This document shows positions 22,149 through 49,000 of a stretch of 64,000 bases of DNA, in pieces (within the stretch, counting starts at the first letter, position 1; every line of letters starts with the position of its first letter). The translations under genes and the position numbers were made by a program. The DNA is from Penicillus capitatus. Lineage: Eukaryota; Plantae; Chlorophyta. A model generated the notes under the pieces. The model worked only from the letters and a program-made list of their open reading frames with translations, ran no database searches and had not been told where the DNA came from. The stretch lies in contig OZ287695.1 of the NCBI GenBank assembly GCA_965649825.1, forward strand, positions 124,001 through 188,000, read 5' to 3'.

Positions 22149-25100
22149 ATGCAACGAGGACGCGGTGGACGTGGACGTCGCGGAGGCGGCGAAGGACGAC
22201 AGGGTGGCTACGGTGGTGAGCACGGACGTGGAGGTCGCGGCAGAGGTGAAGGACGACAAGGCGGATACGGCGATTACGGACGTGGAGGTCGTGGACGCGG
22301 TCGAGACGGTGGACGCGGTCGTGGTGGTGGTGGTAAGGAGAACGGTAACGAACCCTCGCGCATTGGGTTACGGCATTTACAGGTGGAAGATCCGTATCTG
22401 CACAAGAAGGGCAAGATGCCACGCGACGTGTTCTCTCTGGACTATCTATCCGTCTCAACAGACCACAAGAACTCGTCCAGGGGCAGGTACGTCGCAACGC
22501 GCTGTATCTTCGCTGTCTGGTACATGACATGGTATTGGCGTAGCTGGTGCGACGTCCTGATCAAGGAGGACGTGCGGGTCGTTCCTTCGAAGTCTTGGCG
22601 AATTTCTTTATGCTGAACGTCGGTGTCCAGACGGTCTACCACTACGACATCGACATTAAGCCGAAAGAGACGCGACGACTTGGTGATGCCCTGACAGGAG
22701 GCCTGGACAAAGTGTGAGGGGCTGTTGTAGGTGAGGATGATGTGGCCGCCGAAGGCCCGCAACTGTTGCCCATCAAACTCTGCAGATCTGTCGTAAACCT
22801 CTGTGCTCAACAAAACAACTGGAAGCCAAGTTGGACCTATGATGGAAGAAAGAATGTGTATTCGCCAGAAGAGTTTATGAGAAGACAGCGCAGTGTATAC
22901 GAGGTGAACATGGGCACTGCAGAACGTCCCAAGATTTTTGAAGTCGGAATTCAATGGGCGTCTACCATTAACATGCTGGACATGCGTCGTTTCCTGGAAG
23001 ACGGCAACGTGCCTCTCCCCAGAGAAGCCCTTCAGAGCATCGAGGTTTGTAACCGTAAGTCTAAAGGATGTCACGAATTTTGTCCTGATGTAGGTGTGCT
23101 TGAAATTCTCGGCGGCGAATCGTCCAGGGTGTTATCTCTCTGGGCGATCGGTCTACCTGGATGATCAAAAGACACACGTAGAGCTATCGAAGACGGCTGA
23201 GTTATGGACAGGATATCATCAAGGAGTCAAACTCTGCCAGCGGGGACTGATCGTGAATGTGGAGACAACCTGTGCTGCATTTCACAAGAAACAGTCCGTT
23301 CTCGATTTTATGCAGACCACTCTCGGACGCAGCTTCAATCAAATGAACAGAACGTGTTCGAATCATGACGTCGCGGCCATGAACAAAGCCATTGCGAATA
23401 TTTTGGTCCAAGTGATGCACAGACAGAACGAGACGAAAAAATTCAGGTGAGCATGATATTCGATCTTCATCTCTGACCCGATGTCCTGTGGATAGATGTC
23501 GAGGCATCACACGAAAGCCTGCTTCACACGAGAAGTTCGATCTCAAGGATGGAAGCGAAATGACAGTGGAGCAATACTGGAAGCAAAAATACGGACCGTT
23601 GCGTTATGCCTGGTTGCCGTGCCTCGATGTCTCGAAGGGCAGAAGAGTGAATTACCTGCCGATGGAGGTTTGCGAGATCGCCCCTGGACAGCGAATTCTG
23701 AAACTCTCTGACGAACTGACGAGGAATATTATTCGTTTCACGGCTGTGAAGCCAGATGAACGCAAAGAGAAAATTCAGTTGGCTCTTGAACAGGCAGGAA
23801 TTGCCCAAGATCCTGCTGCTCAGGCATTCAAGCTACAGATCGACCATAACATGATTAAAGTCTGTCTCCTGACCCGATGTGATTGATGTGACAACTGTGG
23901 TCGGTTTGTGTAGGCACCTGCCAGAATTCTCCCCCAGCCGCATCTTCAATACCACACGCCGCCGTGCTTAGACACTGAAGACAGGGGAGCATGGAACTTG
24001 GTCAACGCTCGTTTTTTGAGGCCTGGACTGATTCGATCGTGGTCCTTGGTCTCATCTATGGACAGAGGGACGGCAGTTCGCAACGACCTTCTTGAATTTA
24101 TCAAAGAGCTGATGCACATGCTGGGGAATGTCGGCATGACGATCCCACAGACCATCTGTCCGCTGGTCAACAAAGAAACCCGAACGACGGAAGAAGCTCT
24201 TACAGAGGCGATGGCAAGGGCACAGAGAGAGTATGGAGAGCCGCCAGATGTCATCCTTTACCTGCTACCCTCCAAAGGTATCCAGCACACCATCTGCATT
24301 TCTGCCATCTCCAAGGACCTGCTGCTCTCGGTTACAGATCCTTATAGCTATCAAGAAGTGAAGCGCGTCGCTGAGAGAGACCTGGGTGTCGTCACACAGT
24401 GCTTCGTGGCCACGTCTGCGGGAATCGGTATGCTTGACGGGGTATCAACAAGACTGCATCGTTTGCCATCTACCTGTAGGATGCCCAGCACGTGGTCGTG
24501 CTCAGTATCTTGCGAATCTAGCGATGAAAATAAATCATAAAGTGGGAGGCGTCAACACAAGAATGATGCCGGTAGATCAGAACAACTTTCCAGTTCTTGG
24601 CCAAATGGGCAGAAGACCCTTCATCGTCTTTGGTGCCGATGTGACACACCCACCGCCGTCAAGATTCGAATCGGATGCAGGAGATCCTTCCATCGGAGCC
24701 GTCGTCGGCAGCATGGATCCGTACACCCGATATCTACCCCCTCTCCTTCTGACACCTGTTCTGTGATATTCTAGACATCTGGGTCAGTTTGCTGCCAGAG
24801 TGATGGCGATGGAGAGGGGAAAGGAGAAGATGTCGATGAGCATGGCCATCAAGGATCTCTTCTTGCAGTTCCATCGACGAAACAATCTGAAACCGGAAGC
24901 CATCTTCTTCTACAGAGATGGTGTCTCGGAAGGACAGTTTCTAGAGGTGCTCGAGCACGAATATAGCGAAATTAAGAAGGTGATGCCTAGCATTCCTTTT
25001 TGTGGTGATGTGACAGATGTGGTCTGTTAGGCCTGCCACAGTCTGGACCCGAATTATAACCCGCCAATTACCTTAATCGTTGTGCAAAAGTCCCATCACA

Positions 25101-25560
25101 CGCGTCTGTTTCCTATCCGTCGAGAAGACGGGGACCGAAATGGAAATGTTAAACCAGGGACGTGTGTAGACACGTCCATTACCTCCAAGTATGAATTCGA
25201 CTTCTACCTGAATTCCCATGCCGGCATTCAAGGTCCAGATCCACATCCACCTGTCGGATTTCGTTCAGCCCCTCTGCATTGCTACTAGGAACCAATAAAC
25301 CAGCGCATTACTATGTTCTGGTCGACGAGAACGGAATGGGATCGGACGGCATGCAGTTGTTTACCTACTGGATGTGCTATCTCTACTGCAGATGCACTCG
25401 ATCCGTCTCGTATGCTCCACCGGCCTACTATGCCCATCTCGCCGCAATGCATGGGCGGTATCTCGTGGATCAGCGGTCAGATTCGCCGTCGGACGGTTCC
25501 AATGACGGACAGACGTCGATATTTCATGAAAACCTCAAAGAGAGGATGTTTTTTGTATAG
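22149..25560 (+). CDS. AGO: Argonaute (RGG-rich N-terminus, N, PAZ, MID, PIWI)
   Basis: [22 protein letters not shown]; YDGRKNVYS; [31 protein letters not shown]; LGVVTQC; [14 protein letters not shown]; GADVTHP; [10 protein letters not shown]; QKSHHTRLF; GTNKPAHY; [18 protein letters not shown]; ends MFFV*. Confidence 0.97.
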
Positions 25561-25977: not shown

Positions 25978-28837
25978 TCATGGTGAGAGTAAGCTAACAA
26001 GGGCAGCTTGCATTTCATAGGTGCAATCCGCAGCAAAAGAATCACAGATAACATGTAAAGGCATCAACCCGTCCCTATTGGTTATCGATTTCGACGCTCC
26101 GGCGTCGGACAATGCCTAAACAGCCATCCCACCACGCCGTGAGAATCGCACTCGTGGATAAAGTGAGAGATGACCTGCACGACACTGACGTGACCTTTAC
26201 TCGCCGCCAGATGCAACGGAGTCCACCCATAGCTCGTCGCGGCATCTATGTCAGCACCATGAGAAATAAGTATCTGAGAACATCGACTTTAGCGCAGCTC
26301 AGGGGCACGATCTAGAGACGGACTTTCACACTCTGAAGGTGTCCTCCATCGGCAGCGAAATGAAGCGATGACCACAGTAATTGATCTGTCGCGTCGATAT
26401 CGGCATCGTGTGCAATCAGGGCCTAAGAAGAGACGTCACATCAAATCGTCTCGCCGGATGAAAGAGAGAGGCTCATCACCTTCATGACATCGAAGTGTCC
26501 TTCTCCGGCCGCTTCGTGTAGTGCCGATCTTTTGTTGATGTCGAGCTTGTGAACATCTGCCTCGTGCGACAGAAGGACCTGAATAGACATGGCAGAATTC
26601 GGATTGCCTCTGCAAAGGGTGCTGACCTTCACGACTCCGACGTGACCTTCAGAAGACGCAAAGTGCAGTGGCGTCGACCCAGTGTCGTCAATCACATCAA
26701 CCACTGCTCCATACGCGATGAGGAACTTGAAAACACAGTCCGTCCGTCTACGTCGTGTCAAAGTGACAGATGCTGCCATACTTCGACGACATTAGGATGT
26801 CCCCCAAAACTCGCTTGGTGCAGTGGTAAGAGACCAAATCTTGTGGTGGCGTGAACATTTGCGCCAAAAATAACGAGATGCTGGCAGAAGGCAATGATAT
26901 GAGATGGAGAGGAGGGAGTGAGCACACTTTCACGATGGGCAAATCTCCTTTGAACGATGCCATGTGCAGCGACGTCCACCGATTGAAGTCGATAGCATCC
27001 ACTTTTGCACCGGCACTCAGAAAAACCTACACACCACACAGCACCCTTTCAAGCTTCTCATGCCGAAGAAAGTCTCGTTAAGAGGAAGCTACGGTTAGAA
27101 TTGGGGAACAGGAACAGTTGGCTAAAGTAGAGTGACATCCAAAAAGCCAGCCTCGTTGGTGATGTGGCCTCAGACATTGCTCTTAGGTCATGTGGTGGCG
27201 CACGTACCTTTACTGCAGGTCTGGATCCACAGAGAACAGCAGCATGTAGGGGGGTTAGCTTCTTGGCATTAGTCCATTCCAAGGTGGCCTCATGCTCCAA
27301 AAACACCTGCATGCCACAAAGTCATGTAGATGGACTGCACGAAGTCAGCATTCGGTGAGACCTTGGCGCATTTTGTGGCATCAAAGCAAGCAGCCCAGTG
27401 CAGCAGCGTAGAATTTTTTACCAAAGGATAGTCACGAAGCCGTGTGTTGTGATAGGTGGTGTCAATATCTAGACCGTCTGAGAGAATGGCCTCGGCCTCG
27501 ACTCCATTGTCCGAACGAATCGCATTGATCATTTTCTGCACATCTCTCTTTGTAACGAAGCGATCGCACAGATGGACATGTGCACACCTGGAGGAGATCC
27601 TTATTCGACGCTTTCTTAACTCCGGGATCTTTCTCAGGCAATCTTGCCGTCTTGGGTCCCCTCACAGTGTCGTCCTTCGCAGATTCAGGTGTCTTGTCCT
27701 CTCCTTTATGCTTAGAAGAGGGTTCCTGCATACAAGGCATGGTTCAGTCGTCCATGATGGGGATGATGCACCTTGAGTTCTGCATCTGTCAAGTTTGTAA
27801 TCCAAGAAAGGAAAAACTCTACGCTAGTGTACAATCCAGGGAGTGTTGTTGCATTGCTCTCATCTGTGTTAATGGATGGAATGCCAACCAGGCGGTCCCT
27901 ACGTGGAGATCCTTCTGAGATATTCCCGTCCGGGGCATCAGCTATCAGCAAAGGAGCTCCAAAATGACCTAAGCGACCGAGGCATCCGCAAATGGTCTGT
28001 AAGAGAAAAGGGGTCGTCCTACATGACGGACTCTTTCTATCTTGGAGCTCAGCACAGATACTCCGTCCTTTTCTGGCATGCCCGTGGTGTTTTTTGCAGT
28101 CTGAATGCTTCAACACTTGCATTTCTGGTGAAATTTTCATCCCCCCATAAAAGTCTTTCCCAGCACTGTCCATTTTCCAGTCGATCGCGATAAGGACTTC
28201 ACGAGCACGGGACCGCCATCCTCGTGTATGCATCTTCGGCAGAGTGAGGTTCGCTGCCCGATCCAATTTCAGCAAAGCAACATCGTACCCGTCTTCAGTT
28301 TTACCCGTCCAGTGGTCATGCAGATGCACGGCCTTAGTAACGAATGCCTTGAACAACGACACGTCTTGTACATTTGTCACATCGATGGAGCACGACCCCT
28401 TTCATGTTCTTAGTTCCGTTGACATCCATGCCGCAAAGGACAAGTGGTGGAGTTCTTTTGAAACTCGACGGTTCAGCATCCAGACAGTGAGCAGACGTGA
28501 GCACCCACTTCGGTCGAATCAATGTCCCGCTGCATTTTCGCTTCTTCGTCTTTCCGCTGTGAATCGAACAAACAAAAGGAAATCGATTCTCCGCGACTCT
28601 CGTCCAGTTCTGTGCACCACAGCGAAAAACACGCACTCTGGCAACATCCGCCTTACGATGCCTCACCTGACAATGCGTTTCTGAGGCGGATTTAAGAACT
28701 TCGCCTCGGAGATGTTCTGCACGAAGAGTTCAGAAGAGGTAGGGAGGGAAAGGAGGATTGCTTTGTCTGCCGTGGGCCGATTGTAATGCGGCGAACAGTA
28801 AAACGAAGACGGTGGTTACGAAGTGTGCTTTCTGCAT
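25978..28837 (-). CDS. Gene A: signal peptide, S1 protease-like domain (catalytic Ser replaced), linker, ankyrin array (7 repeat exons)
   Basis: MQKAHFVTTVFVLLFAALQSAHG; WVLTSAHC; GYDVALL; HFGAP where GDSGGP is expected; cap exon ..TLLHWAACFDATKCAK; seven 33-aa exons; terminal GLMPLHVICDSFAADC..LLSP*. Confidence 0.82.
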
Positions 28838-31169: not shown

Positions 31170-33670
31170 TCAAAGCCAAAGTCCGTGGATGGCGACTGTC
31201 GCCGAACAATAAACCAAAAAACAAAAGCCAATACATGTGACAGAAACAAACACAAATCCCTTGACCCCTCCCCAAATGACGACACCGAACAGTAATAGAG
31301 AGCAAAAAAGAAAGCCACCCACTACAATCAATGCTACGATCTTAATTTTGTCACAGTCGCAGGAGCCAATGCTACAGTTATACAAGATAGTTCCGATGAT
31401 GATCAAACCGCATCCTCCAAGTACACATCCTACGCCAAGGGCAATGTTCATGTCACACCATCCACCAAAATGAGATGCGCATCTGACAAGCCACCGCTCG
31501 TCGCACGCCCACCTAGTGCAGTAGTTTTTTTCCGCTTCAGTACACCGACAAACTGCCGAAGAGATCTGATAACTGGAAGAGATGTTCGCCTGCCAGACGC
31601 GACAGTACTCTCCACTCGCGTCATCAGCCGCACATTCGTAGTACTCTTCTGTATCGATCTCGCCGTTTGATTTCTGCACGCAACTCCACTTCAGACAATA
31701 ACGATCCTTCTCAGATCTCGTTTCGCACACGCAGTCTCTGTCGTCCCTCGAACAGTGCCATGACTCGCAGACAGGTGAGCCTCTTTCAGAATCACAACGA
31801 CATGCTGTGGGATCTCGATCGCCCGAGGAATGAGTGGTCTCCCATGATTGACAGCAGTCTCGGCGCTTGTGAATGCAGCGAAACTCTTCGTGGTACGATC
31901 CCCTTGCTTTCTTGTACAGACCTCCTCTGTACTTCCCGGACTCTGAGTAATATCCAGCATCTCGTTTAAGAACATTCCAGGAGGCGAGAGAAACATCGCC
32001 TCCAGCTGAAAGTTCCACTTTCTCTGTTCTGTTTTTGGAAACTTGACTTTTTGGTTGAACGGAGTTTGATGAAGAAACAGTGTCGTTGATATTGTCTTCG
32101 CGTGACGAGAGTGGCATTTCCTGCAAGGCATGGATGGTCAGAATTCGGGTTGCCTCACCTCTCTTACCTCTTCTGACGGTAGCGAATGGATCGACTGGGT
32201 AACACCATTTTTGTCCGGTGCATCATCTTCCTCCTGGAATGAAAACATCAACAAGAGAAAAGCATCATGAGCATTCGTTACTTCATCCACCAATTCGACA
32301 ATGGGTTTGAAGGTGTCTTGTGTTGAACTCCTCTGAACAGACAGGGAGATATTGTCTTCTTCTGCCGAACTCCTCTGAACAGACAGGGAGATATTGTCTT
32401 CTTCTGCCGAAGTCCTCTGAACGGACAGGGAGTCATTCTGTACACCAAGAAGTCTTTTAGGCGTCGTTTAAACATCCCCTCTATGAGCTCAAAGTGTTGC
32501 GAGCACATGTTTATCGAGCAGGCACTCTCATCAGTGAAAACGAAGCTACTAGCTACCACTAGCATAAAAAGACCGCTTTTTGTCATAGACATCTTACTTT
32601 GGTAACCTCTCCGTCGATAACACTCGTTATCCAGTCCCAAAAGTGACCGATGCGCAGGTACACACCTGGTGGGCTTCCGTCACAGTCAGTGGACCCAAAG
32701 GAAATGACGCCAACGATCAGATCGCGCTCAGGCCTTCCAGCCGGCAGGTCGCCGTTCGGCCTGTTCGGAATGAGTAACGGACCTCCAGAGTCACCTAAAC
32801 GAAGAAGAACGTAATTTGAGGCAAAGTCGGATAGAAGAGAGATATGTCTCACCTTTGCAGGTGTCTTCGTTCATCAATCCAGCACAGACCATCTGTTCGT
32901 CTATTTTGTAACCGAACCTTTCTCTGCAACTCAGAGGAGGGAGGTAGACTAGGTTCTCTGCCATCTTCAGTCGATTTGGAAACGCGCCTGTCTGTGTTCC
33001 ACCCCAACCTAGGGCGGTGAAAAGTCGCCCGTTTCTGAATTCGCCTCCCTGTCTATCGAATGCCGGGAGTGTGATGTTCGCCTTCCTGTCCAGTTTGATC
33101 ACAGCAATGTCGTATCCTCCGTTCACATCCCTTGTCCAGGAGTCATGGACGTAAGTGGCCACGCCATTGAAGGTCTAACAAACAGAAAAAGCTAAGGGCT
33201 CAGCTGTCGATTTGGCCGAGAGAACCAGTTCGGGAATATTGTCGTCAAGATCGTGTATCCCGCAGTAGACGAGAGGGTTTCTTCCGGTCGAACCGGTGTG
33301 GAAGGGATCAACGCAGTGGGCGGCCGTCACCACCCACTTCTGACGGAAGAGAATCCCTCCGCAGAAGTGGCTTTCGTCCGCTCTGTCTAGCAGACTGCAG
33401 ACGTACGGGAATCTGCCAACCGGCGCTTCTTTTTCTTTCTATCGGACAACGGGGAACACACTGACAAAGCACGTTGTCAACCGAGGTGAACTCACCGCTA
33501 TTCTCGGAACGCTGTTCGTGAAGTTGGAGCTCTTTTTTTCGCCTAGTTAACGCCGTGCGAAATTCGCAGGTTGGTACAGCTGTATGAAGTGAAATACTTG
33601 TTTGGGCGACAGACGCACCGGGACTGGATATGAATAGCACAAATATGAAATGCGTGAGTGCTCTCTTCAT
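31170..33670 (-). CDS. Gene B: signal peptide, trypsin-like S1 protease, acidic stalk, Cys-rich domain, 3 TM helices
   Basis: MKRALTHFIFVLFISS; VVTAAHC, GYDIAVI, EDTCKGDSGGP. Phase-0 exons NDSLSVQR.., EEDDAPDK.. and EMPLSSRED.. link to the 31170-32126 Cys-rich/TM ORF. The fusion is inferred from splice phase. Confidence 0.78.
32325..32437. repeat. 42-bp coding tandem repeat (~2.7 copies) in the stalk of gene B
   Basis: gaactcctctgaacagacagggagatattgtcttcttctgcc twice plus a partial copy; encodes SAEEDNISLSVQRS on the minus strand. Confidence 0.9.
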
Positions 33671-36600
33671 GTTACGTTGAGCGAAAACTTGGCGTCTGTA
33701 GATTCAACGTTTGCCGAAATGCACGAATGAAAAAGGTACTTATTTGTAAGACGCGAACTGACACACTTCTGTTCGATGACGTGTGATGTAATTTTCTCAT
33801 CTTTATCATTGCTTACAGTCGACATCTAACCCTTGGCCGTTCCTTACGGTTGGCATCTGTAACACTCTCGTTGTTGTAGAAGACGACGGCAGATATCTTT
33901 AGAGAGAATGGGAAATGTTCAAATGAGAAGTATCATGGCGGTGTTATTCGACATGTGCAGAAACGCAAGAGATGAATGCTTTCAGGCATTTAAAAGGTCC
34001 TCGAGGGTGTCTCTTTTCCTCGCGGGACACTCTGAATTCTTCGCTTCGCAGACGAGGTCCAGAGGAGTGCTTCCTTCTTCGTTTGCTGAAGACGTGGATG
34101 CACCGGCATCGACAAGCACCTAGGATTCTCGCCTCATGCCTAGAGAGAGAATGCATTCGCTATCTACCTCGACGACATCCAAGTGACCGCCATAAGATGC
34201 AAAGTGCATTGCCCTCCATCCGAATTCGTCAGCGATCTCCACATCCACACCTCTGTCAAGAAGAACCTGTCCATCGAAGCAGATGCCGATGCCGGAAAAA
34301 CGAAGTAGGTGGATAACGACTTCGACAAACTCAGTCTGGCCGTAACGTGACGCTATGTGAAGCGGAGTCTGTCCATCGTCCGATGCGGCATTGATGTCAG
34401 CACCATTGCGAGCCAGAATCTGTCGACAGACTTCTTGCGATGCGACAACCAAGTAAGACGAAGGCGGACCGTTGCAATCTGATAGTGTCCGTCGTAGGCT
34501 GCTTGATGAAGAGGACTGGATCCGGTTTCTTGGACGGCATTGACTTGTGCTCCACTCGATACGAGAGTCTGTTTGTCATATCATTGGTCATCGTTGCCCG
34601 AGAGACAGATGCAGACGGACCTTCACGATATCGAGATCGCCGTAGTACGCCGCATAGAGTAAAGGCGTCCATCCGTATTCGTCGACAGAGTTGACATCCG
34701 CCTCTTCATTTACCAGAACCTGTAGAGTGATGATGCAGAGAAGGGTTAGAAGGAAGGGAAGAGCCCGCAAACCTGAACGACTTCATGGTGTTCGTTGTAC
34801 GCGGCATAAAGCAAAGGCGTCCATTCGTATTTGTTAACGGCATTGACAGCAGCCCCACTGGCGATGAGAATCTGCCACCAAATGCTGTCTGATCTGCAGC
34901 GCGAAGAAGATGCAGATGCACCTTTGCGACATCCGCGTGTCCAAAACGTGCTGTATAGTGAAGAGGAGTCCATTTGTCTTCATCCACGGCATTAACGTCT
35001 GCACCTTCGGCTATCAAAATCTGTCCATCGATGACTCTTCTGGCGAGATCTGTAAACAGGGTGAAGATGCACCTCTGCGATATCCATGCTTCCTTGACGC
35101 GCTGCCAAGTGCAACGAAGTCACTTCATAGTCTTCAACGGCATCCACATCTTCGACTTTAGGAGCCAGAATCTGATGACAAGATTGCAATTCTTGCAAAT
35201 CGAAAAAATCGCGTTACTTCTGCGGCGCCGACGTGTCCATAGGAAGATGCGAGATGCAGCGGATTCGCGCCGCTATTCAGGGCCACGTTGACGTCAACGC
35301 CTTCCTCGACCAAGGCCTGACGAACACTTTCTTCGACCGGCGTGCTTGAATGGAAATGCGAGTTACCTTCACAATCGCAGAATGTCCGTAGCGGGAAGCC
35401 GTATGCAGCACGTTCCATCCATCCCATCTGACAGCATCGACATCTGCTCCACGGAGGATCAACATCTGCCAACAGATCTCCATTGCCTCAGTGTCAAAAC
35501 CGAGAAAGAGTGATGACCTCTGCAATGTGAGAGTGTCCGAAACGCGATGCGAGATGGAGCGGCGTCCACCCTTCGTCCTTGACCGCGTCAATATGCGCTC
35601 CGTTGCGCATGAGAATCTGTCGGCGTCGATACTCCGCTGCCTTACGCACAAGAACGATAAGGAATGACCTCCGCGATCATGAAGTGTCCGTATCGTGCCG
35701 CTTCGTGCAGAGGGGCGACTCCATTGGAATCAACGGCATTAGCATCCGCACCTCTGTTTAATAGCAGCTGCCAACAAGACCGCGTTATGGATGCATCTCA
35801 CACGATCGCGAACGCACTTTCACGATCTTAAAGTGCCCGGCGAACGAGGCGAGATGCAAGGGTGTCCAGCCGAAGTCTGTCAAAGGGTCGACGTCGATAC
35901 CTTCGTCGAGCAGAATCTGTCGGACAACTGCCGCAGTCGAGACACCAAAACGCAGCAAGGGTCACCTTTGCGATCTCCTTGTGTCCATAGCGCGCCGCCA
36001 CGTGCAGCGCCGTCCAGTCTTCGTCTGTCACGGCAGTGACATCGGCGCCAAGATCAATCAGCAGCTGCGAAAAGGTCCTCAATGTCGGCGCATGAGGCGC
36101 CATGAAAGCATAGAGCGGACAGAGACTGACCTGCACGATGTCGGTTCTGTCGTAATAGGCGGCGTAATGCAACACCGTCCACTGCTCGTAATCTGCCGCG
36201 TCAATGTCCGCTCCGTTTTCAATAAGCACCTGCGCATCGTTCGCGAAAACTCTCGTCCTGAACGACGTCGTCGGCGTACCTTTGCGACTTTGTCGTTTCC
36301 GTATTGCGCTGCCCTGTGCAGCGGCGTCGCTCCAGTATCGTCGACCGCGTTCACGTTAGCCTCGGACAATAAGAGGACCTAAGCACGTACAGTCGTACGT
36401 TCTCGCTCTGTGTGGATGCGCAAGCCAGTTTGCTCGAGAGTCGGGAAGCACGCACCCTCGCTACCGACGCGGATCCGTTGACTGCTGCTACGTGCAATGG
36501 CGTCGATCCGTCAACATTCCTTTGGCTCACCTTCGAGCCATCGTCCAACAGAATCTGCAGAACAGTCCTTTAGCCGGAAGGGAACAGGCATAGCCACATA

Positions 36601-38230
36601 AAACGCGACAGCCATTGTCACAGTCTCACCTTTGCACACTTGACTGCACCGTAAGCCGCTGTCCAATGAAGAAGAGTCGGCTGTCCTGCCAATGGATATC
36701 CTGAAAGTTCAGAGTTGTTGTAAACGGATTGGACAGGCAGGCCATCCGCGAGCACAGATCTCAGTTTCGCGCCGTTATCGTCTGCGATGGAAGAGATCGC
36801 CTCCTAGAAATACACTGTCACCCATCGATCTGTGCAAGGAATGTTAGCGGCTTACCAAGATGGACATTCCATCTTCTGTGTCCGGTGAACGGCTCCGATC
36901 TTTGATGATCATCTCTTGTGCTGTACTTACTGGAGATTCGTTCTGAAGTGAGTTGAGTGAGAGAGTGAGCACATATTGTAAAGGAAGATGTGAATAACCT
37001 TGTCGATGATATCCAAGATCCAACCCCAGAAGTAGCCAATGCTCGTGAAGGCATCAGGACTGCTTCCATCACACCTTCCTTCTCCGTTTCCAAATAAATC
37101 GATACCGACAACCAGATCCAGTTTCGGGGTTCCTTCGCTTACATTACCGTCTGGCATGCTGGGAATGATCAACGGCCCTCCCGAGTCCCCTATTAATATC
37201 ATCTCACTTTCATGAACGGCAGAGATAGAGCAGATCCGATCACCTGAACACGCCTGTTGAGTGACTTCAGGTGATTCAACGCAGATGATGTGATCTTTTG
37301 GGTGAAAGCTGAGTTGTTCTCCACATGGCTGCGACGCCAACTGGACGAGACTATTTGCCATCTGCAAGTAACGTGGGTATCGCTCGCGTCTCGTTCTTCC
37401 CCAACCCACAATTGTGAACTCCTGATCCTCATCAAAGTGGGCAATCTGATGAGCAAACAAGGGCTCCGGCAGATCGACGCTTCGGTCGAGCTCCAACAGA
37501 GCGATGTCATAACCCGACCTCGCGCGACCCTTCCAAGATTCGTGAATGTGCGTCGCTTTCGTCTTCAGTGTCTGTACAAGATGTCCGACGTCTCAAAGCT
37601 CATTCATCACACGTGGAGGCAGGCTTACGGGCACAGAGGCAGTTCGCCGACGATCGCTGAAACCACAAAGGACTGTGGGCGTTTGTTCGACCGATTCTCC
37701 TCCCTCCGGGTCGACGCAATGCGCCGCCGTAAGAATCCATTTGCTGCGAAACAGCACGCCAGTACAGGTGCTACTACTTCCTTCGACGTATGTGTACGTC
37801 AAGTGGCACACGTAAGGGAACCTCTCTTCCGGAACGCGCACTCCCTGTCCAACGCAAAAAAAACAATCAACATGCAGACAATAGTGCCAGAGTGAGATTG
37901 TTTACCCCCGCTACGTTCTGACGATAGTCTGTGGCGTTATCCGTCTCGGCAGTGCCTAACGAAGAAACGCACTCCCGTCGATACACGTCACGGTCGACGC
38001 AGAGATTACCGAAGGCTCGGTAGTGTGCTCGTATGTCTCCGAAGGACAGGTCGCAAGCGACGGCGAGGACGAGGAGTATTGCTTGTGCGAGACGGCCTCG
38101 CCCATTGAGACCGCCACGAATACCGGGCTGAGTTTGTACACTACCTCCCATTGTCGTTCCCGAACGAATCGTGTCGCAGCCGGGGTTGCACTAACAGAAG
38201 AACCGAGTCGTTCTCAAGTGGAAACAGGTG
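33660..38230. repeat. Segmental duplication, homologous to ~44920-50330
   Basis: Exons and introns are nearly identical between the two blocks; homology continues more weakly into the flanking spacers (38230-41800 vs 50330-52620). Confidence 0.92.
33982..38151 (-). CDS. Gene C: signal peptide/anchor, S1 protease (H-D-S intact), linker, ankyrin array (16 repeat exons)
   Basis: [19 protein letters not shown]; [15 protein letters not shown]; WILTAAHC; GYDIALL; QQACSGDSGGP; cap exon ..[16 protein letters not shown]; sixteen 99-nt exons (first at 36456-36554); terminal [20 protein letters not shown]. Confidence 0.88.
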
Positions 38231-40370
38231 TCGTAAGAAAGCGCGATCGTCGAAGTCGACCTACACGATGAGCCGAAAACGGTAAAGGCAGGATGCTTTT
38301 CCGCCGTTTGCAGCTGCTTAAGTAGCTTCGACTGGTCTGTTCAGCTGCCATAAAGATCCGTATTTCTATGAGTCTTTGTCACGCGTCATTGTTCCCATTC
38401 GTTTTCATTGGTTTTTATATGGTACATTTATATTGCCGGTTCCTCTTGATTACAGTATCGCCTTCCATGGCTAAAACCACAAAAGGCGTTACTGGTACGG
38501 AGACCAGGCGGACAAAAGAATACGATGTCTGGGGGCTTTTTGCAGTATGCTCCGTGAGTATGTGGCACTCGACGACAGACAACGTAGATAGTGCGCTGAC
38601 GCAACGACGCGGTGTGTACCAGAACGGGAACAACCGCGCAGCCGTTCTTTTACGCAATGGGTAACACCTACCGCCAGCTCAGTTTTTGATACCCCTGTTC
38701 TTTCCGTACGAGGTGTAAATGGTTCTGTGATGTTTGTTCATGCGATTTAGACATGACGAGAAGTATGAGGTGAGCATGACATCGTGCAGGACGAGCATGA
38801 TGAGAGGTATAACGTCATGCGACTTCCAAGTGTCGAATGGTCATGACTCTTCTGCGAGCCGTTTTTAATATACTAGTGCGATGCACATTTCGCGTTGATT
38901 ATTCGATGACGGCGGAGGCGAGCCCCGAAGAACCCGGCCTTCGCTGAATCTAGGACGTAGAGCAAAACTTTGTTCTGAGCTGCAAGATGACCGCGAGCTG
39001 ATAATTTGCGGATTGTCTATTTTGTAAAATGGTGAAAGTGGAGGCCGCTAAGCTTGTCGATGTCACCTCCTCATTTAGAAAGCATTCGTTTTGCATGCAA
39101 AATCCCTGTTCGCTGCTAAAACTGTAACAAACCGAAAAGGGTAACGTTAATTTGTTTAAAAGAATGGCGCAATTTCGACTGAGTGGTGATGGGGCATCTC
39201 TAAAATGACGGTGTTTGCGTTGTTATAATGGGAAATGATGTGACAGTCCTCGGAAGACAGTGAAATACGCTGCGGACTAAGGCTGTTGGATAATTTTGTA
39301 AAGACTCAAGAACGTTCTGGCAGCAGAAATCAATGATCATTGTTCTGTCCATGACCATTCTTTATTCTAGAGCTGCGTGACGTAACCGTTGACGTGCCCG
39401 GTTACTGCAGAGAAAGCGCAACGACGAGGACGGTGAACTTCAGTAAATTTCGTGTTGACGTTCCCAGCTGTTAGCTCGGAAGCTTCTAGTATTCACTGTG
39501 AACTTTCAGTCTCCCTCACTGTGAGTTTTCGGCGAATTTCCTAGTCTTGTCGGTCCCAACACTTGAAGAGTATAAAAGCGAGGGTATGAGACATTAAACA
39601 TCTTCCGTTTTACATTAGCGTTCTACTTGTGTTTGTCTATTGCATACATTCCAATGTCAACAACATCTACTGGCTACGGTTGTAGTAAGCTATCTGTTGG
39701 TTACGCTTCGGGTTTGGTTTTCGCAATCCTAACTAGCCCGTTTTCATCTTACCTCAAGATTTCCGCTGCGATTGTGAGATGAGTCAACGCGGAGACGATC
39801 AAGAATCCCCCGCTAGTCCCATTGGCGTCCTCACAGGCCACGAGAACCAATAATACCTGCATTGTCGTCGCGTCACGGCAAAATACATCCCAAGAGACGT
39901 GGAGGGTGAGGGGCTTGCAACGAATCTTCATGATCTCTCTCTGTAGACAAAGAATTACTGTACGGAGACTGTCTGTTTGCATTTGTACGAGTCAAAGAGT
40001 CGACGCTGTTCGAGTTGGAACAACTGAATGCATTCGTTGATTGCGAAGCGTATGACCCGTGATTTGGCGATCTCTCTTGTTCTTTGCCGGTAAGAAACCA
40101 ACGAATGGCACCACGTATGTGTTCTGGAATCAAGAAGAAAACGACTGTGGCGTATCTACGAACTTTGCACAATCGATTAGTGAAAGCGGAGAGCGATCAC
40201 GTATCGACATCAATTGAGCAGCGCACTCTGGTACTTCTGTTTTCTCTTCGTGAGTTGATTGATCAAGCATTCTTTCTCCCTTGGCAACGTATCACATCGA
40301 TGAGATTGAAGATTTCATGATCAGGATCACCGTCTCCGTGGCATGTTTAGTTAATTCTATGGGCCAGCGC

Positions 40371-41356
40371 TTTTTTTTTGATTGTGGGCTTTTACAACTC
40401 CTTTTTGTGAAGATCAGGAGTGGGTCTGTACATTAGGTGTGAACAAAGTATCTATGTATCACACGTGTCATCCCGGATTAAGGATGCAAGGCAGCCTGGA
40501 TTAGGAGTTGCACCAACTTCTTCCTTCTTGTCTCCACTTGGCACTGATGTCTTCTACGAACTCCGACATCTCTTTCGGAAACTGGAAAATGCACGCAGTT
40601 GAGAGCGTTCCCGGAATCTGTCGCTGGAGCTTCCTTCGTGCTTCATGAAACAAAGGGCATTCCAGTAAGAGGTGCTCTCTGTCTTCTAGCGCCGCTCCAC
40701 ATGAGCATTCCGGAGATTCGGCCAGGGCTCCAAATCTGAACAGGTATTGTTTCGAAGGGAAGTGGTTTGCTGCGAACTGCGAGAGTCTGGAAGCCTGGGC
40801 TCTCTCTAGGTATTTCCCAGGGAAGTGCCCTCGTCGGAAATTCGTCAGGTGCGCCGTCAGATGGAAGCTGGTGTTTCGCTGTTTGATGTCCTTTGCTGCC
40901 TCCTTATTCAGAAAGTGCGCGATCCGGTGCTTGATCCATGATCTGTGCGGCGGAATTCCCTTTGGGCCGCCACTGCTGTCTTCTGTGATAGCGGTTGCCC
41001 GTCTCCACTCTGACAGGGCATAGAACAGACCGGGTTTCCATTTCTGAGTTGCCCAGAAGATCGAGTGGCCATCAGTGGACCAATCGAGAAGTTCTTGTTG
41101 TATCTGGATGCCGGTTTCTGAGACGTTGGTCCAGCTTAGAGCTGCTTTCTGGATTCGGTTCGAGTCGACAATTACGACCAGGCTTTGTCTTCGATTCGGC
41201 GCTGTCGAGGTCAGCCGCTCTTTCAGGGTGCACAGGCCCTTGTACAGACCCACAAGCGTGGAGAGCTCCTCCGACGCCCAGTCTGGATCCCACCAGCTTT
41301 CACCTTGTCGGTTGTCTCCTTGAGAGAGTCCCCAGCTGGTGCCGAGGCGGTGACGG
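40371..41356 (-). mobile_element. 5'-truncated non-LTR retrotransposon (LINE ORF2 3' end: degenerate RNase H-like region plus CCHC finger)
   Basis: CSCGAALEDREHLLLECP zinc knuckle; poly(A) seen as T9 at 40371-40379; TSD atgggccagcgc(tt) at 40359 and 41357; the paralogous empty site atgggccagtgtttgc lies at ~52369. Confidence 0.92.
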
Positions 41357-41509
41357 ATGGGCCAGCGCTTGCTTTCTATGTAGCACGTGTATTGTGCAAG
41401 GATGGGTGCAAATGATGAAGGAACCTTGATTAAGCTTGCACTCACAAAAACAACAGAACAGAGGCATTGAAACCTCGATGAGAGTTTTTATTAACGCCCG
41501 TAGTGCAAG

Positions 41510-42887: not shown

Positions 42888-44928
42888 CTAATACCACAGT
42901 AGAACGATGATGACGGCTAGCATATTTAGGTTAACGGCCCCTTGAGAAGCACTATCGCCATCAGGAGTGCTATACTCAATGTCAAGATAATCATCTTCGA
43001 TTAGCGATAGTATTTCCTGCAAGGCACGGATAGTCAGAATTCGTGCTTCCACAGTCTTTTACCACCTCTGATAGATGCGAATGAATCATCTCGGGTGCAC
43101 CATCGCTACCAGGAGTACCATAATCAATGCGAGTAGATATATCTTCAAGTGACGAAGGTGGCATTTCCTGAAAGGCACGGACGATCAGAATTAGTGTTAC
43201 CACAGTCTTTCACCTCCTCTGACAGATGCGAATGAATCATCTCGGGTGCACCATCGCTACCAGGAGTATTATAATCAATGCGAGTAGAATTATCTTCAAG
43301 TGAGGAAGGTGGCATTTCCTGCAAGGCACGGACGATCAGAATTCGGGTTGCCACAGTCTTTTACCTCCTCTGACAGATGCGAATGAATCATCTCGGGTGC
43401 ACCATCGCTACCAGGAGTATTATAATCAATGTGAGTAGAAATATCTTCAAGTGAGGAAGGCGGTATTTCCTGCAAGGCACGGACGATCAGAATTCGGGTT
43501 GCCACAGTCTCTTACGTCTTCAGACGGTTGCGATTGAATCGTCTCGTTTGCATCATCCACATCAGGTACAGCATCTTCTTCCTAAAAAGGCAACATCAGC
43601 AGAGAAGAAAATGATAATCACCTATTATGTTAGGCAATGATTCGATAGTGTTTTTGTTGGAGTTTTCTGAACGGATAAAGAATCATTCTATATACCAGGA
43701 AAAGCGTCGGGAGACGTCATTAAAGCTTTATTGAGTTCTAAGGTGTTGTGAGCGCATGTTTATAAAATAAAACAAAGACAAACACTCTCATCAGCGACAA
43801 ACGAAGTCACAGTAAGCATTAGCGCGAACAAGAGCCCTTTTGCCTCAAGTATCTCACCTTGGAGACCTTTCCGTCGGCGACACGTGTCAACCAGTCCCAA
43901 AAGTAACCTATGCTTAGATAGACTGCTGGTGAGCTGCCGTTACAGTCTTTGGACCCAAAAGAAGTGACGCCAATGACCAGATCACGCTCTGGCCTGCCAG
44001 CCGTCAGGTTGCCATCCGGCTTGTTCGGGATGAGCAAAGGACTTCCAGAGTCACCTGAATGAAGAAAAACGTAATCTGAGTAAGTATGGGTCGGATAAGG
44101 AGAGAGCTGTAGCTCACCTTCACAGGTATCCTCGTACATTAATCCAGCACAGATCATCTTTTCAAACTCGATGCCAAACCTTTTTCTGCAACGTTGAGGA
44201 GGAAGGTTGATCAGATTCTCTGCCATCTGCAATCGATCTGGGAACGCGCCTTTCCGGTTCCTCCCCCAACCTACGGCGGTGAACGCTTGTCCGTATCTGA
44301 ATTCTCCCCCTTGTCTATCGAATACAGGCAGTGTGACGTTCGCCTCCCTGTCCAGCTCGATCACAGCAATGTCGTATCCTTCATTCACATCCCCCGTCCA
44401 GGAGTCATACATATGGGCGGCCACGCCACTGAAGGTCTGTCGAACAGAAAGTTAAAAAGTCGACAGCGTGATTTGGGCAACGGAACCAATTCGGGAATAT
44501 AGTCGCTGAGGTCGTGTATCCCGCAGTAGACGAGAGGATTTCTTCCGACTGTTCCGGAACGGGAGGGGTTAATGCAGTGGGCGGCAGTCACCACCCACTT
44601 TTGACGGAAGAGCGTCCCTCCGCAGACGTGCCTTTCGCTCACTCTGTCGAGCAGACTGCAGACGTACGGGAATCTGCCAACCGGCGCCTCCACTCCCTAT
44701 AAGACAACGCATACACATTGTCAAAGCGCGTTGTCAACCGAGGTAAACATACCGCTATTCTTGGCACGCTGTTCGTGAAGTTGAAGCTCTTTAACTCACC
44801 TAGCAAAAGCCGTGCGGAAGTTACCGGTTTGCAACTGTTGCTGCTGGTGACCTACCCGTTTGGGCGACAGTAGTATAACGGCCGACTAAGAGTAAAATTA
44901 ACGCAGCAACTGCGAGTGCTCCTTTCAT
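42888..44928 (-). CDS. Gene D: signal peptide, trypsin-like S1 protease, repeated acidic stalk exons, short hydrophobic (GPI-signal-like) tail
   Basis: MKGALAVAALILLLVG; VVTAAHC; GYDIAVI; EDTCEGDSGSP; three 35-aa exons E(I/M)PPSSLED..PEMIHSHLSE(E/V); final exon ..DGDSASQGAVNLNMLAVIIVLLWY*. Confidence 0.75.
43017..43515. repeat. 151-bp tandem repeat whose unit is one 105-nt exon plus one 46-nt intron
   Basis: Three near-identical exons (43063-43167, 43214-43318, 43365-43469) separated by near-identical GT..AG introns. Confidence 0.9.
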
Positions 44929-45020
44929 GTTACGACAACCAAATTCGTCGTCAGGACGAATCGATTTGTAAAGAGATTTACGGACGGCGAAGAAGTACTG
45001 ACAATAATGCGAACTGGGAC

Positions 45021-45871
45021 TGTTAGAGCATGGAACGTCACTGTCGAATGACGTGACGTTATCCTATATATTCGCGTACGGACTCACCTGTAAGGAATAC
45101 CCGTCCGACTCTCCTCGCATCGCAGCCTCGACGCGCTCAGACCAATCGCCGACCCTATCGGTCCTAACAACTGGTTTCGGAGCAGGTCGTTCTTGGGGTC
45201 GCGTTTGGGAGCGCTGGTGTCGAGGGCCGCTGCAGAATCGTTTCGTCAGAGATCCGTCGACTGCCTCGGAAGTCGTGCGCCGTTCAGTTTAGAGAGTCTT
45301 GACTATCCGACCTAGTTTTCTGAGCCCGTATCCGTCGTCTGTACCGTGTCCGTGAGAGTTCTGACCGTTATCTGTGACAAGACGAAGCGCGAGGCGAGTG
45401 ACAGTGCCTCGGAAGCGTAAGAGCCGAAGGCTGTGTGGATGGTGATTCCCACAGAGGGAGAAGCATGGGAGCGTTGAGGAGTGACGCACATGGCTCGACT
45501 CCTGGCCAGCTGGCGTTTCGAGTACCAAGTAGTGTCCGACGTAGAAGCCGAAAAGAACCGTTAGAAGATCGACGCGCCGATTTCAGCAGTCGTATTGGGT
45601 CAACATTAGGATTTCAAGCAGAAAGAGTCGGGACATAACACCATTGTGTCCTATTCACTATTCTGTTGTTTTACGGACTTTGTCTCAAGAGAGACTGTCT
45701 GTTGTTTATTGGTGGGGGGGGGTTGTTGGATCGGGAAACGTCACTGTCGAATGACAAGACGTTTACCTATATAACGACGTACTGAGCACCTGTAAAGAAT
45801 ACCCGTCCGACTCTCCTCGCATCGCAGCCTCGACGCGCTCGGACCAATCGCCGACCCTATCGGTCCTACCA
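45021..45871 (+). mobile_element. TRIM-like miniature LTR retroelement (851 bp, non-coding)
   Basis: Direct terminal repeats 45021-45169 and 45724-45871, each TG..CA; PBS-like TGGTTTCGGAGCAGGT right after the 5' LTR (resembles the tRNA-iMet PBS TGGTATCAGAGC); G-run PPT before the 3' LTR; 4-bp TSD GGAC; empty paralogous site at ~33760. Confidence 0.88.
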
Positions 45872-46093
45872 GGACTCTTCTGTTCAATAAAGAGTAATCT
45901 AATTCTCTGTCGCTTCATTCCATTACAGTCGACATCTAATTCCTGACAGTTTCTTCGTACATTGGTATCCGTAACACTCTCGTTGTCGTAGAAGGCAACG
46001 GCAGATGTCTTTAGAGAGAATGAGAAATGTTTAAATGAGAAGTATCATAGCAGTGTTATGTGACATGTGTAGAAACGCAAGAGATGAATACTT

Positions 46094-49000
46094 TCAGTCA
46101 CTCAAAAGGTCCTCGAGGGTGTCTCTTTTCCTCGCGGGGCACTTCGAATTCTTCGCTTCGCAGACGAGGTCCAGAGGAGTGCTTCCTTCTTCGTTTGCGG
46201 AAGACGTGGATGCACCAGCATCGACAAGCACCTAGGATTCTCGCCTCATGCCTAGAGAGAGAATGCATTCGCTATCTACCTCGACGACATCCAAGTGACC
46301 GCCATAAGATGCAAAGTGCAGTGCCCTCCATCCGAATTCGTCAGCGATCTCCACATCCACGCCTCTGTCAAGAAGAACCTGTCCATCGAAGCAGATGCCG
46401 ATGCCGGAAAAACGAAGTAGGTGGATAACGACTTCGACAAACTCAGTCTGGCCGTAACGTGACGCGATGTGAAGCGGAGTCTGTCCATCGTCCGTTGCGG
46501 CATTGATGTCAGCACCATTGCGAGCCAGAATCTGTCGACAGAATTCTTGCGATGCGACAACCAAGTAAGACGAAGGTGGACCGTTGCAATCTGATAGTGT
46601 CCGCCGTAGGCAGCTTCATGAAGAGGAGTCGATTTGTCTTCATCGATCTCATTGACATGTGCTCCACTCGATACGAGAGTCTGTTTGTCATATCATTGGT
46701 CATTAGTCCTCGAAAGACAGATGCAGACAGACCTTCACGATTTCGAGTTTGCCGTAGTACGCCGCATAGAGTAAAGGCGTCCATCCGTATTCGTCGACAG
46801 AGTTGACATCCGCCTCTTCATTTACCAGAACCTGTAGAGTAATGAAGCAGAGAAGGGTTAGAAGGAAGGGAAGAACCAGCAAACCTGAACGACTTCATGG
46901 TGTCCGTTGTACGCAGCATAAAGCAAAGGCGTCCATTCGTATTTGTTAACGGCATTGACAGCAGCCCCACTGGCGATGAGAATCTGCCACCAAATGCTGT
47001 CTGATCTGCAGCGCGAAGAAGATGCAGATGCACCTTTGCGACATCCGCGTGTCCAAAACGTGCTGTATAGTGAAGAGGAGTCCATTTGTCTTCATCCACG
47101 GCATTAACGTCTGCACCTTCGGCTATCAAAATCTGTCCATCAATGACTTTTCTGGCGAGATCTGTAAACAGGGTGAAGATGCACCTTTGCGATATCCACG
47201 CTTCCGTGACGAGATGCCAAGTGCAACGAAGTCGACCCGTGGTCTCCAACGGCATCCACATCTTCGACTTTAGGAGCCAGAATCTGTTGACAGGATCCCG
47301 TATTTCTTAGAAAACGAGAAAACCGCGTTACCTCTGCTGCGCCGATGTGTCCATAGAAAGATGCGATATGCAGCGGATTCGCGCCGCTATTCAGGGCCAC
47401 GTTGACGTCAACGCCTTCCTCGACCAAGGCCTGACGAACACTTTCTTCGACCGGCGTGCGTGAATGGAAATGCGAGTTACCTTCACAATCGCAGAATGTC
47501 CGTAGCGGGAAGCCGTATGCAGCACGTTCCATCCATCCCATCTGACAGCATCGACATCTGCTCCGCGGAGGATCAACATCTGCCAACAGATCTCCATTGC
47601 CTCAGTGTCAAAACCGAGAAAGGGTGATGACCTCTGCAATGTGAGAGTGTCCGAAACGCGATGCGAGATGGAGTGGCGTCCACCCTTCGTCCTTGACCGT
47701 GTCAATATGCGCTCCGTTGCGCATGAGAATCTGTCGGCATCAATCCTCCGCTGTCTTACGGACAAGAACGATAAGGAACGACCTCCGCGATCATGAAGTG
47801 TCCGTATCGTGCCGCTTCGTGGAGAGGGGCGACTCCATTGGAATCAACGGTATTAGCATCCGCACCTCTGTTCAATAGCAGCTGCCAACAAGACCGCGTT
47901 ATGGATGCATCTCACACGATCGCGAACGCACTTTCACGATCTTAAAGTGCCCGGCGAACGAGGCGAGATGCAAGGGTGTCCAGCCGAAGTCTGTCAAAGG
48001 GTCGACGTCGACATCTTCGTCGAGCAGAATCTGTCGGACAACTGCCGCAGTCGAGACACCAAAACGCAGCAAGGGTCACCTTTGCGATCTCCTTGTGTCC
48101 ATAGCGCGCCGCCACGTGCAGCGCCGTCCAGTCTTCGTCTGTCACGGCAGTGACATCGGCGCCAAGATCAATCAGCAGCTGCGAAAAGGTCCTCAGTGTC
48201 GGCGCACGAGGCGCCATGAAAGCATAGAGCGAGCAGAACACGAACCTGCACGATGTCGGCTCTGTCGTAATAGGCGGCGTAGTGCAACACCGTCCACTGG
48301 TCGTAATCTGCAGCGTCAATGTCCGCTCCGTTTTCAATAAGCACCTGCGCATCGTTCGCGATAGCTGTCGTCCTGAACGACGTCGTGGGCTTACCTTTGC
48401 GACTTTATCGTTTCCGTATTGCGCTGCCCTGTGCAGCGGCGTCGCTCCAATATCGTCGACCGCGTTCACGTTAGCATCGGACAGCAGGAGGACCTAAGCA
48501 CGTACAGTCGTGCGTTCTCGCTCTGTGTGGATGCGCAAGCCAGTTTGCTCGAGAGTCGGGAAGCACGCACCCTCGCTACCGACGCGGATCCGTTGACTGC
48601 TGCTACGTGCAATGGCGTCGATCCGTCAACATTCCTTTGGCTCACCTTCGAGCCATCGTCCAATAGAATCTGCAGAACAGTCTTCAGCCGGGACACAACA
48701 GGCATAGCCACATAAAACGCGACAGTCATTGCCACAGTCTTACCTTTGCACATTTGACTGCACCGTAAGCCGCTGTCCAATGAAGAAGAGTCGGCTGTCC
48801 TGCCAATGGATATCCTGAAAGTTCAGAGTTGTTGTAAACGGATTGGACAGATAGGCCATTCGCGAGCACAGATCTCAGTTTCGCGCCGTTATCGTCTGCG
48901 ATGGAAGAGATTGCCTCCTAGAAATACACGTCACTCATCGATCTGTGCAAGGAATGTTAGCAGCTTACCAAGATGAGCGTTCCATGTTCAGCATTCGGTA

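Follow-up and report, generated by a model that had tools for sequence, protein, structure and literature searches.

Why should each internal ankyrin repeat of a gene family occupy an exon of its own? The question is raised by a 64,000-nt stretch of DNA from the green alga Penicillus capitatus (contig OZ287695.1, positions 124,001 to 188,000; hereafter the window), in which six genes (A, B, C, G, H, and I) carry ankyrin arrays that are divided into short exons of nearly constant length. The interval studied most closely, 33982-36554, reaches from the stop codon of gene C back to the base at which its first 99-nt repeat exon begins. An original prediction treated such exons as interchangeable cassettes that provide combinatorial binding diversity by shuffling or alternative splicing. 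The layout is real, regular, and conserved across species. It is probably a historical by-product of array growth by duplication of exon-plus-intron units, with later diversity that did not come from cassette exchange.

A scan for ankyrin-like units in which AG, an open frame of 96-105 nt, and GT follow one another, with units chained and gaps closed manually, recovers 70 internal ankyrin-repeat exons in the six genes. They had been read by eye as about 70 units of 33 codons, one of 34; that estimate and the per-gene counts of 10, 7, 16, 16, 15, and 6 (genes A, B, C, G, H, and I, respectively) are recovered exactly; 69 exons measure 99 nt, and the remaining one, in gene I (62368-62469), measures 102 nt. 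Phase 0 applies at every repeat-exon junction (70/70 exons), as anticipated. The expected intron length of about 45-75 nt describes most cases, with 62 of 64 inter-repeat introns at 45-77 nt (median 52), and fails for two introns of 160 and 181 nt (gene A, 18060-18219; gene B, 27027-27207). Start-to-start spacing of repeat exons in gene C is 145-176 nt, mostly 148-153 nt, in agreement with a predicted periodicity of about 150 bp. The intron consensus is weak (GTNMG ... (A/G)CAG), and two inter-repeat introns in the window have GC donors. GC-AG repeat introns occur at 18633-18681 and 58432-58489, and also at 11527 and 16320 of a contig from another organism (L003, below). By our own arithmetic, chance alone should yield about 100 bare AG-99 nt open frame-GT units over the two strands of 64 kb, so the non-random part is the occurrence of 70 ankyrin repeats in tandem and in register. 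Pfam alignment combined with the exon table places the repeat intron between Ank profile positions 19 and 20 (...VVK before the intron, LLL... after it), within helix 2, and this position is identical in all 70 exons. Exon 3' ends are mostly AAG, GAG or CAG, and 54 non-redundant repeats together give the canonical consensus xLLxxGADVNAxDxxGxTPLHxAxxxGHxxIVK.

Such dense fragmentation is a property of the arrays. Gene C has 17 introns in the 1722 nt that encode its array and five in the 1242 nt for the protease, linker, and N-cap, and exons reach 1860 nt in other genes of the window. Very long open frames, with up to 619 uninterrupted residues, occupy 8383-13717 on the forward strand; they contain repeats of the right-handed beta-helix and Chlamydia-PMP types, after which comes a multi-pass membrane segment. 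Their length indicates that long exons are normal in this genome. A tandem repeat at 43012-43557 has a 151-nt period, the same as an exon plus intron, and was considered as a further array, but it is not ankyrin; it is young (3.6 copies, 91% matches) and is found too at the start of a second contig described below.

Gene C extends beyond 36554 to 38151, with an N-cap and a trypsin-like protease domain upstream of the array, and splices from 23 exons and 22 introns at canonical sites into an unbroken frame of 987 amino acids. The protein belongs to the ankyrin-repeat family (PF00023 / PF12796), with Pfam matches to Ank at E = 9.2e-139 (14 stretches) and to Ank_2 at E = 2.4e-133. Trypsin (PF00089) matches at E = 1.9e-29 over profile positions 3-220, and the catalytic His, Asp, and Ser are in place (LTAAHC, DIALL, GDSGGP). 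It is the only partner domain of the array that Pfam detects, with neither a ROC-COR GTPase nor an NB-ARC domain. The five 5' exons encode a hydrophobic signal-peptide-like N-terminus, the protease, and a linker that is one exon. A trypsin domain also precedes the array in genes B, G, H, and I, which brings the count to at least five of the six genes; none was seen upstream of gene A. The C-cap exon is homologous in all six genes (44-45 codons) and has two conserved cysteines (...VC......C...), with homologues in relatives, and the N-cap exon has homologues in genes A, B, I, and G and in the related sequences L003, L005, and L006. In gene B, the active-site motif is GHFGAP rather than the GDSGGP of its paralogues; the catalytic Ser and preceding Asp are replaced, and the product is probably a pseudo-protease that retains its ankyrin array. 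Judged from their sequences, these genes are predicted to encode trypsin-like S1 proteases with a C-terminal ankyrin solenoid that consists of an N-cap, n repeats, and a two-cysteine C-cap. The proteins are probably secreted, and we infer that the array binds targets. A C-cap disulfide would suit a secreted ankyrin domain and would be unusual for the ankyrin fold. The aligned window paralogues and L003 all keep a phase-1 intron immediately before GDSGGP (37190-37243 and homologous sites), and a Bryopsis gene seems to be interrupted there too. Several copies of this intron have a length divisible by three and no in-frame stop, and prokaryotic gene callers read through them.

Relatives in other genomes and metagenomes indicate how old the layout is. 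A first search with the protease found no close named relatives (nearest, insect trypsins at 27% identity), and a search with the spliced array for transcripts of the source organism brought up generic ankyrin proteins alone, none above 38% identity. L003, a contig from a different and more AT-rich organism (Logan run SRR33785046), carries two genes of the same design with seven and eight internal repeats; 14 exons share the intron position and phase, and introns are 43-92 nt long. These genes adjoin genes with starch-synthase-type glycosyltransferase and RETICULATA-like domains. A scan of Joint Genome Institute metagenomes with a trimmed alignment yielded L005 and L006 (Ga0099817), each a single open frame with untranslated ends that encodes, in order, a signal peptide, trypsin domain, linker, N-cap, four or ten repeats, and C-cap. 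The splice model predicts precisely the junctions at which their repeats meet. Since every genomic copy has introns in its protease part, L005 and L006 are most likely transcripts. Two further candidates, L009 and L011, read as ordinary trypsins without ankyrin repeats and were rejected as family members. An exhaustive profile search produced 118 cluster representatives, of which the named ones are proteins of Ostreobium quekettii and Bryopsis sp. KO-2023. Their protease domains are 32-34% identical to that of gene C and share signature motifs, including GDSGGPL(L/I)IP..P.GN...G.P..D.VVGI.SFG. Gene C and GMH37229.1, GMH36841.1, CAD7703549.1, and CAD7695175.1 all have a signal peptide, S1 protease, linker, ankyrin array, and cysteine-bearing C-cap. 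In Bryopsis sp. KO-2023 GMH37229.1, repeats lie on separate exons of 96, 99, and 99 nt, which are AG/GT-flanked, in phase 0, and interrupted at the same position, although introns are 137-346 nt long compared with about 52 nt in the window. In contrast, Bryopsis GMH36841.1 and Ostreobium CAD7703549.1 have the whole array in one exon and a four-cysteine C-cap instead of the two-cysteine C-cap found here. The intron position shared by the window, L003, and Bryopsis indicates that the trait is old and inherited. Taken by themselves, the named relatives point to a source that is probably a green alga related to the Bryopsidales.

Recent copies of gene C bear on both the gene model and array evolution. 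The window contig (ctg338108_23x_l, 81.6 kb) and a second contig of similar coverage (ctg339180_25x_l, L002) come from European Nucleotide Archive metagenome assembly ERZ25074695. L002 is collinear with the window from 43343 to 26648 at 90-100% identity, apart from differing retroelement insertions, and carries a third copy, C', with 16 repeats. The two contigs may represent haplotypes, strains, or a recent segmental duplication. An insertion of about 1 kb found only in the window (39943-41445) has an unannotated 314-amino-acid open reading frame without a Pfam match, possibly a retroelement remnant, while one found only on L002 (3003-7925) is a 4.9-kb element that encodes domains of reverse transcriptase, RNase H, and integrase.

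It is extremely unlikely that the introns are unspliced and that the region consists of pseudogenes or mis-modelled sequence. The spliced-array search found no transcripts of the source organism, which leaves room for such an artefact, but 22 canonical introns restore the 987-residue frame, and exons are more conserved than introns in the three pairwise comparisons of C, G, and C' (5.5 versus 6.9%, 7.3 versus 12.6%, and 5.8 versus 11.6% divergence). Exon insertions and deletions are of 3 nt only, and the repeat junctions are unchanged in L005, L006, and the annotated Bryopsis protein. Exon conservation, 3-nt length changes, and the junctions of transcript-like relatives all point to a sound gene model.

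The repeat units themselves appear to be old. Tandem Repeats Finder makes no DNA-level call inside the ankyrin arrays, which argues for ancient units, and repeat exons are only 40-68% identical to one another in DNA. Among 47 introns, the best pairwise local score is 21 compared with 23 in shuffled controls; introns so unlike one another are old copies and not recent insertions. Introner-like elements and homologous introns were ruled out because similarity among introns does not exceed that in shuffles. Decayed pseudo-exons were sought in the two long introns of genes A and B, where protein and DNA repeat profiles matched nothing. Gain of introns after the array existed, either by repeated insertion at proto-splice sites or by one gain that spread by in-register conversion, is quite unlikely. 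Sister genes with intron-free arrays would suit late gain, as would exon ends of AAG, GAG or CAG that resemble a proto-splice site and the occurrence of conversion between repeats, but dozens of insertions would be required at exactly the same codon boundary. Moreover, the position is common to three organisms, and dissimilar introns are neither recent introner-type insertions nor recently spread copies.

Growth by duplication of exon-plus-intron units probably explains the layout. An ancestral repeat would already have held a phase-0 intron in its second helix, at Ank positions 19 and 20, and the array would have lengthened by tandem DNA duplication of single units or blocks, which would leave an intron at the same place everywhere. 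Introns would afterwards have diverged to saturation while exons stayed under selection, and the introns are most likely spliced constitutively. Subsequent diversity would come from whole-gene tandem duplication, occasional block duplication or loss, and homologous recombination, with further contributions from short-tract conversion between paralogues and in-register repeats and from relaxed or diversifying change at contact positions. A recent block duplication is seen in L006, in which three repeats are duplicated with DNA identities of 87% (repeats 4 and 7), 90% (5 and 8), and 74% (3 and 6). Repeat number ranges from 6 to 16 among paralogues and from 3 to 10 among relatives.

Several points weigh against this explanation. 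Duplication is not directly visible in the window, where adjacent units have at most 58% protein identity and unlike introns, compared with 87-90% DNA identity within the L006 block. Single-exon arrays in sister genes mean that introns were either lost there or gained in the other subfamily. L005 and L006 could in principle be intron-free genes. Both the unit-duplication origin and constitutive splicing are inferred, and constitutive splicing is assumed in the scheme. Finally, the proposed change at contact positions draws on the small, conversion-affected counts given below.

Repeat order counts against cassette exchange. Genes C and G share 92.4% identity across 4.7 kb, with each of the 16 repeats in collinear position, so the proposal that they diverge after repeat 9 does not hold; differences are concentrated in repeats 10 (12/99) and 14 (15/99). 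The same order is kept in C' over all 16 repeats. Against an inter-repeat background of 37.5 +/- 7.7% protein identity, C/G and gene H align along a diagonal for repeats 1-8 (64, 48, 64, 67, 55, 48, 61, and 55%) and not beyond repeat 8, and I1 and I2 pair with C1 and C2 at 55%. Repeats 1-8 of H are positional orthologues of C/G repeats 1-8. The restriction of the diagonal to repeats 1-8 indicates that the N-terminal array half was inherited as a block, whereas the C-terminal halves of C/G and H differ beyond recognition. No recent tandem exon copy occurs in the window, as the maximum within-gene identity between repeat proteins is 58%. Repeats C12 and C13 had been put forward as an exon duplication, but their similarity is confined to nucleotides 41-80 (34/40, the top value among 1431 pairs), while the flanks (21/40 and 10/19) are at background and the proteins are 48% identical, within background. 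A short conversion tract would fit this pattern better than whole-exon duplication.

Exchange among C, G, and C' is frequent and ignores exon borders. Gene C stands apart from a matching G and C' between protease exon 3 and the N-cap, and it is the odd one out again in repeat 14; in repeats 4 and 9-13, it is C' that differs from a matching C and G. Topology changes 166 times along 454 informative sites compared with 287 expected (p <= 1e-4; minimum of 251 in 10,000 permutations). Introns co-vary with their flanking exons in this mosaic. Repeat 13 of C' is 98% identical to C and G over 44 nt (positions 5-48) and then has no detectable match from mid-exon onward; the sequence compared yielded no donor for this divergent half. 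A 26-nt tract in G14 and C'14 matches repeat 11 at 25/26 and 23/26, respectively. Tracts that include introns and break inside exons are not exon-delimited cassettes: the detected exchanges are ordinary recombination and short-tract in-register gene conversion.

It is unlikely that exon skipping or choice and inter-gene exon shuffling generate combinatorial binding surfaces, as in brown-algal ROCO and NB-ARC-TPR (tetratricopeptide repeat) genes. The premise that loss, gain, or exchange of any repeat exon is frame-neutral is borne out, since every exon is a symmetric phase-0 multiple of three. Variation from 6 to 16 repeats among paralogues, fastest evolution at contact positions, and a tandem gene cluster with frequent sequence exchange would also suit cassettes, and there are precedents in the in-frame skipping of one 99-nt ankyrin exon in mouse Ank3 (PMC4449188) and in reported alternative splicing of repeat exons in brown algae (PMC11378527). 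Against shuffling stand the conserved order of paralogues (C/G versus H in repeats 1-8; C, G, and C' in repeats 1-16), constant repeat number in the three recent copies, the absence of near-identical exons within window genes, and exchange tracts that break mid-exon. The spliced-array search, with only generic ankyrin proteins among its matches, found no isoform evidence. Introns of about 52 nt also favour intron-defined splicing, in which exon skipping is uncommon. With introns this short, splice sites are expected to pair across introns, and intron retention is favoured over exon skipping. For 54 of the 62 short introns, the open frame would be lost if the intron were retained.

Very unlikely, in our assessment, is a further proposal that the introns are kept for use at the DNA level, as unrelated spacers of about 50 nt that limit homology, suppress unequal crossing-over, and allow in-register conversion. 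Stability of the 16 repeats in C, G, and C' despite recombination, short inter-repeat conversion tracts (26 and 40 nt) inside exons, and introns that share no similarity are consistent with it. Nevertheless, the low DNA identity of the exons would itself limit unequal exchange, single-exon arrays persist in sister genes, and the argument is made after the fact.

Selection on the arrays is uneven. The ratio of non-synonymous to synonymous substitution rates (dN/dS) is 0.43-0.55 for the whole array in the three pairwise comparisons, and 0.97-1.23 at six canonical target-contact positions compared with 0.35-0.46 at all others. Values near 1 suggest relaxed or diversifying change on the binding face, although they derive from 11-25 non-synonymous differences per pair and are confounded by conversion. 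A more speculative and rather improbable idea is that of an "aimable protease" repertoire, in which a constant, secreted S1 head is steered by an array that is varied through regulated skipping of 99-nt exons and conversion within the cluster. The phase-0 design, fast contact positions, mosaic cluster, and serine loss in gene B fit this idea. If true, it would amount to an innate recognition or attack system in a coenocytic green alga, like the leucine-rich repeat (LRR) receptors of brown algae but with the effector built in.

Coordinates of the genes and exons are collected below.

Features of the six ankyrin-array genes in the window
Feature	Coordinates	Strand	Remarks
Gene A	17781-19723	+	N-cap ~17781-17909; 10 repeat exons 17961-19532; C-cap 19586-19723
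Gene A GC-donor repeat exon	18534-18632	+	
Gene B	25978-28380	-	C-cap 25978-26115; 7 repeat exons 26175-27306; N-cap region 27422-27535
Gene B trypsin-like open reading frame	27712-28380	-	
Gene C C-cap exon	33982-34119	-	45 codons + stop; two conserved cysteines
Gene C repeat block	34168-36554	-	16 exons x 99 nt; 15 phase-0 GT-AG introns of 46-77 nt
Gene C repeats R1-R8	36456-36554, 36280-36378, 36131-36229, 35966-36064, 35818-35916, 35669-35767, 35518-35616, 35367-35465	-	
Gene C repeats R9-R16	35218-35316, 35073-35171, 34922-35020, 34773-34871, 34621-34719, 34470-34568, 34321-34419, 34168-34266	-	
Gene C N-cap ankyrin exon	36630-36803	-	58 codons
Gene C five 5' exons	38151-37906, 37844-37629, 37571-37244, 37189-36999, 36942-36856	-	
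Gene G	46094-50544	-	C-cap 46094-46231; 16 repeat exons 46280-48669
Gene H	56640-59645	-	C-cap 56640-56777; 15 repeat exons 56827-59066
Gene H GC-donor repeat exon	58490-58588	-	
Gene H trypsin domain end	~59547-59645	-	upstream of array
Gene I	61894-63823	-	C-cap 61894-62028; 6 repeat exons 62074-62947; N-cap 63010-63123
Gene I trypsin open reading frame	63299-63823	-	

The locus includes a threefold tandem unit (31170-38442, 43436-50544, and 52851-59700; 76-92% identical) with the order cysteine-rich membrane protein gene (no Pfam match), short trypsin-only gene, and trypsin-ankyrin gene; the middle unit is without the membrane protein gene. An Argonaute gene at 22149-25560 on the forward strand has an Arg/Gly-rich N-terminus, exons of about 200-560 nt, and a PIWI domain whose best named matches, at 47-50% identity, are from green algae, plants, and chytrids and are not decisive for the taxon. 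No tRNA or Rfam match occurs in the window. Upstream of it (contig positions 1-20200, L004) are a katanin/Vps4-type AAA ATPase and a Peptidase_S41 fragment, the latter of a kind that would suit a plastid-bearing organism.

Several aspects of the locus have wider significance. With all 70 exons in one window in register, it shows with unusual clarity how introns can multiply along with the repeats of an array. The single-exon sister subfamily belongs to the same algal order, and one Bryopsis genome holds both kinds; this provides a ready comparison for the effect of introns on repeat gain, loss, and conversion. The protease-ankyrin family, probably secreted, is expanded in siphonous green algae and is not described in the Ostreobium and Bryopsis genome preprints, neither of which mentions ankyrin; the Ostreobium preprint describes no more than a general expansion of S1 peptidases (189 genes, of which about 40% are secreted), which has been linked to external protein degradation in that alga. 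The consequence for annotation is modest: prokaryote-type gene callers split these genes into pieces of 33 residues.

Among known systems, the closest in layout is mouse Ank3, which has 24 ankyrin repeats. Single 99-bp exons hold most of them, and some exons of 186 or 198 bp hold two (PMC4449188, Table 2); the single-repeat exon 16 has been observed to be skipped in frame (PMC4449188). Ank3 and the window genes have in common one repeat per symmetric 99-nt exon whose removal is frame-neutral. Exon length in the window genes equals repeat length, with a constant intron position and phase, as expected of repeat-per-exon genes such as vertebrate ANK1-3 that grew by tandem duplication of exons with their introns. 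They differ in intron length (89 bp to 25 kb in Ank3, about 52 nt here) and in protein context, which is a cytoskeletal adaptor in Ank3 and a protease, probably secreted, here. The intron position also differs: Ank3 repeat exons start AATGG, GACGG or AGTGG, which encode x-Gly just before TPLH, whereas the window intron lies 14 codons away. These Ank3 exon starts are placed on the ankyrin consensus under the assumption of phase 0 in Ank3. The different position implies an independent origin of the layout, and, if Ank3 is in phase 0, the repeat-per-exon ankyrin design seems to have arisen at least twice.

Growth of repeat proteins by exon duplication is reportedly treated by Street, Rose and Barrick in 2006 and by Paladin et al. 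in 2020. General surveys of exon duplication are mainly of animals, and the window case differs in its regularity (70/70), mini-introns, and intron-free sister subfamily. According to Bjorklund et al. in 2006 (PMC1553488) and Schaper et al. in 2014 (PMC3995336), exon borders in repeat proteins commonly enclose complete units, and duplications of ankyrin repeats tend to involve several units together. The Ectocarpus parallel that had been drawn for these genes is apt as an analogy, and only as an analogy. As in brown-algal ROCO and NB-ARC-TPR genes, there is one repeat per short exon, variable repeat number, and an algal multigene family (PMC3341825; PMC11378527). Fast change at ligand-facing positions is a further resemblance, suggested here by small, conversion-affected counts. 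In brown-algal ROCO genes, one LRR occupies a 72-bp phase-2 exon, for which shuffling, positive selection, and alternative transcripts are reported (PMC11378527), compared with one ankyrin repeat per 99-nt phase-0 exon here. Here the partner domain is a trypsin-like protease; in brown algae it is a GTPase or NB-ARC. Intense shuffling and alternative transcripts are reported for the brown-algal exons, whereas repeat order in the window is conserved, its exons are at most 58% identical, and collinear arrays occur in place of shuffled, near-identical repeat exons. Repeat-per-exon ankyrin genes were already known; an independent intron position, an intron-free sister subfamily, and a protease-ankyrin family are added here.

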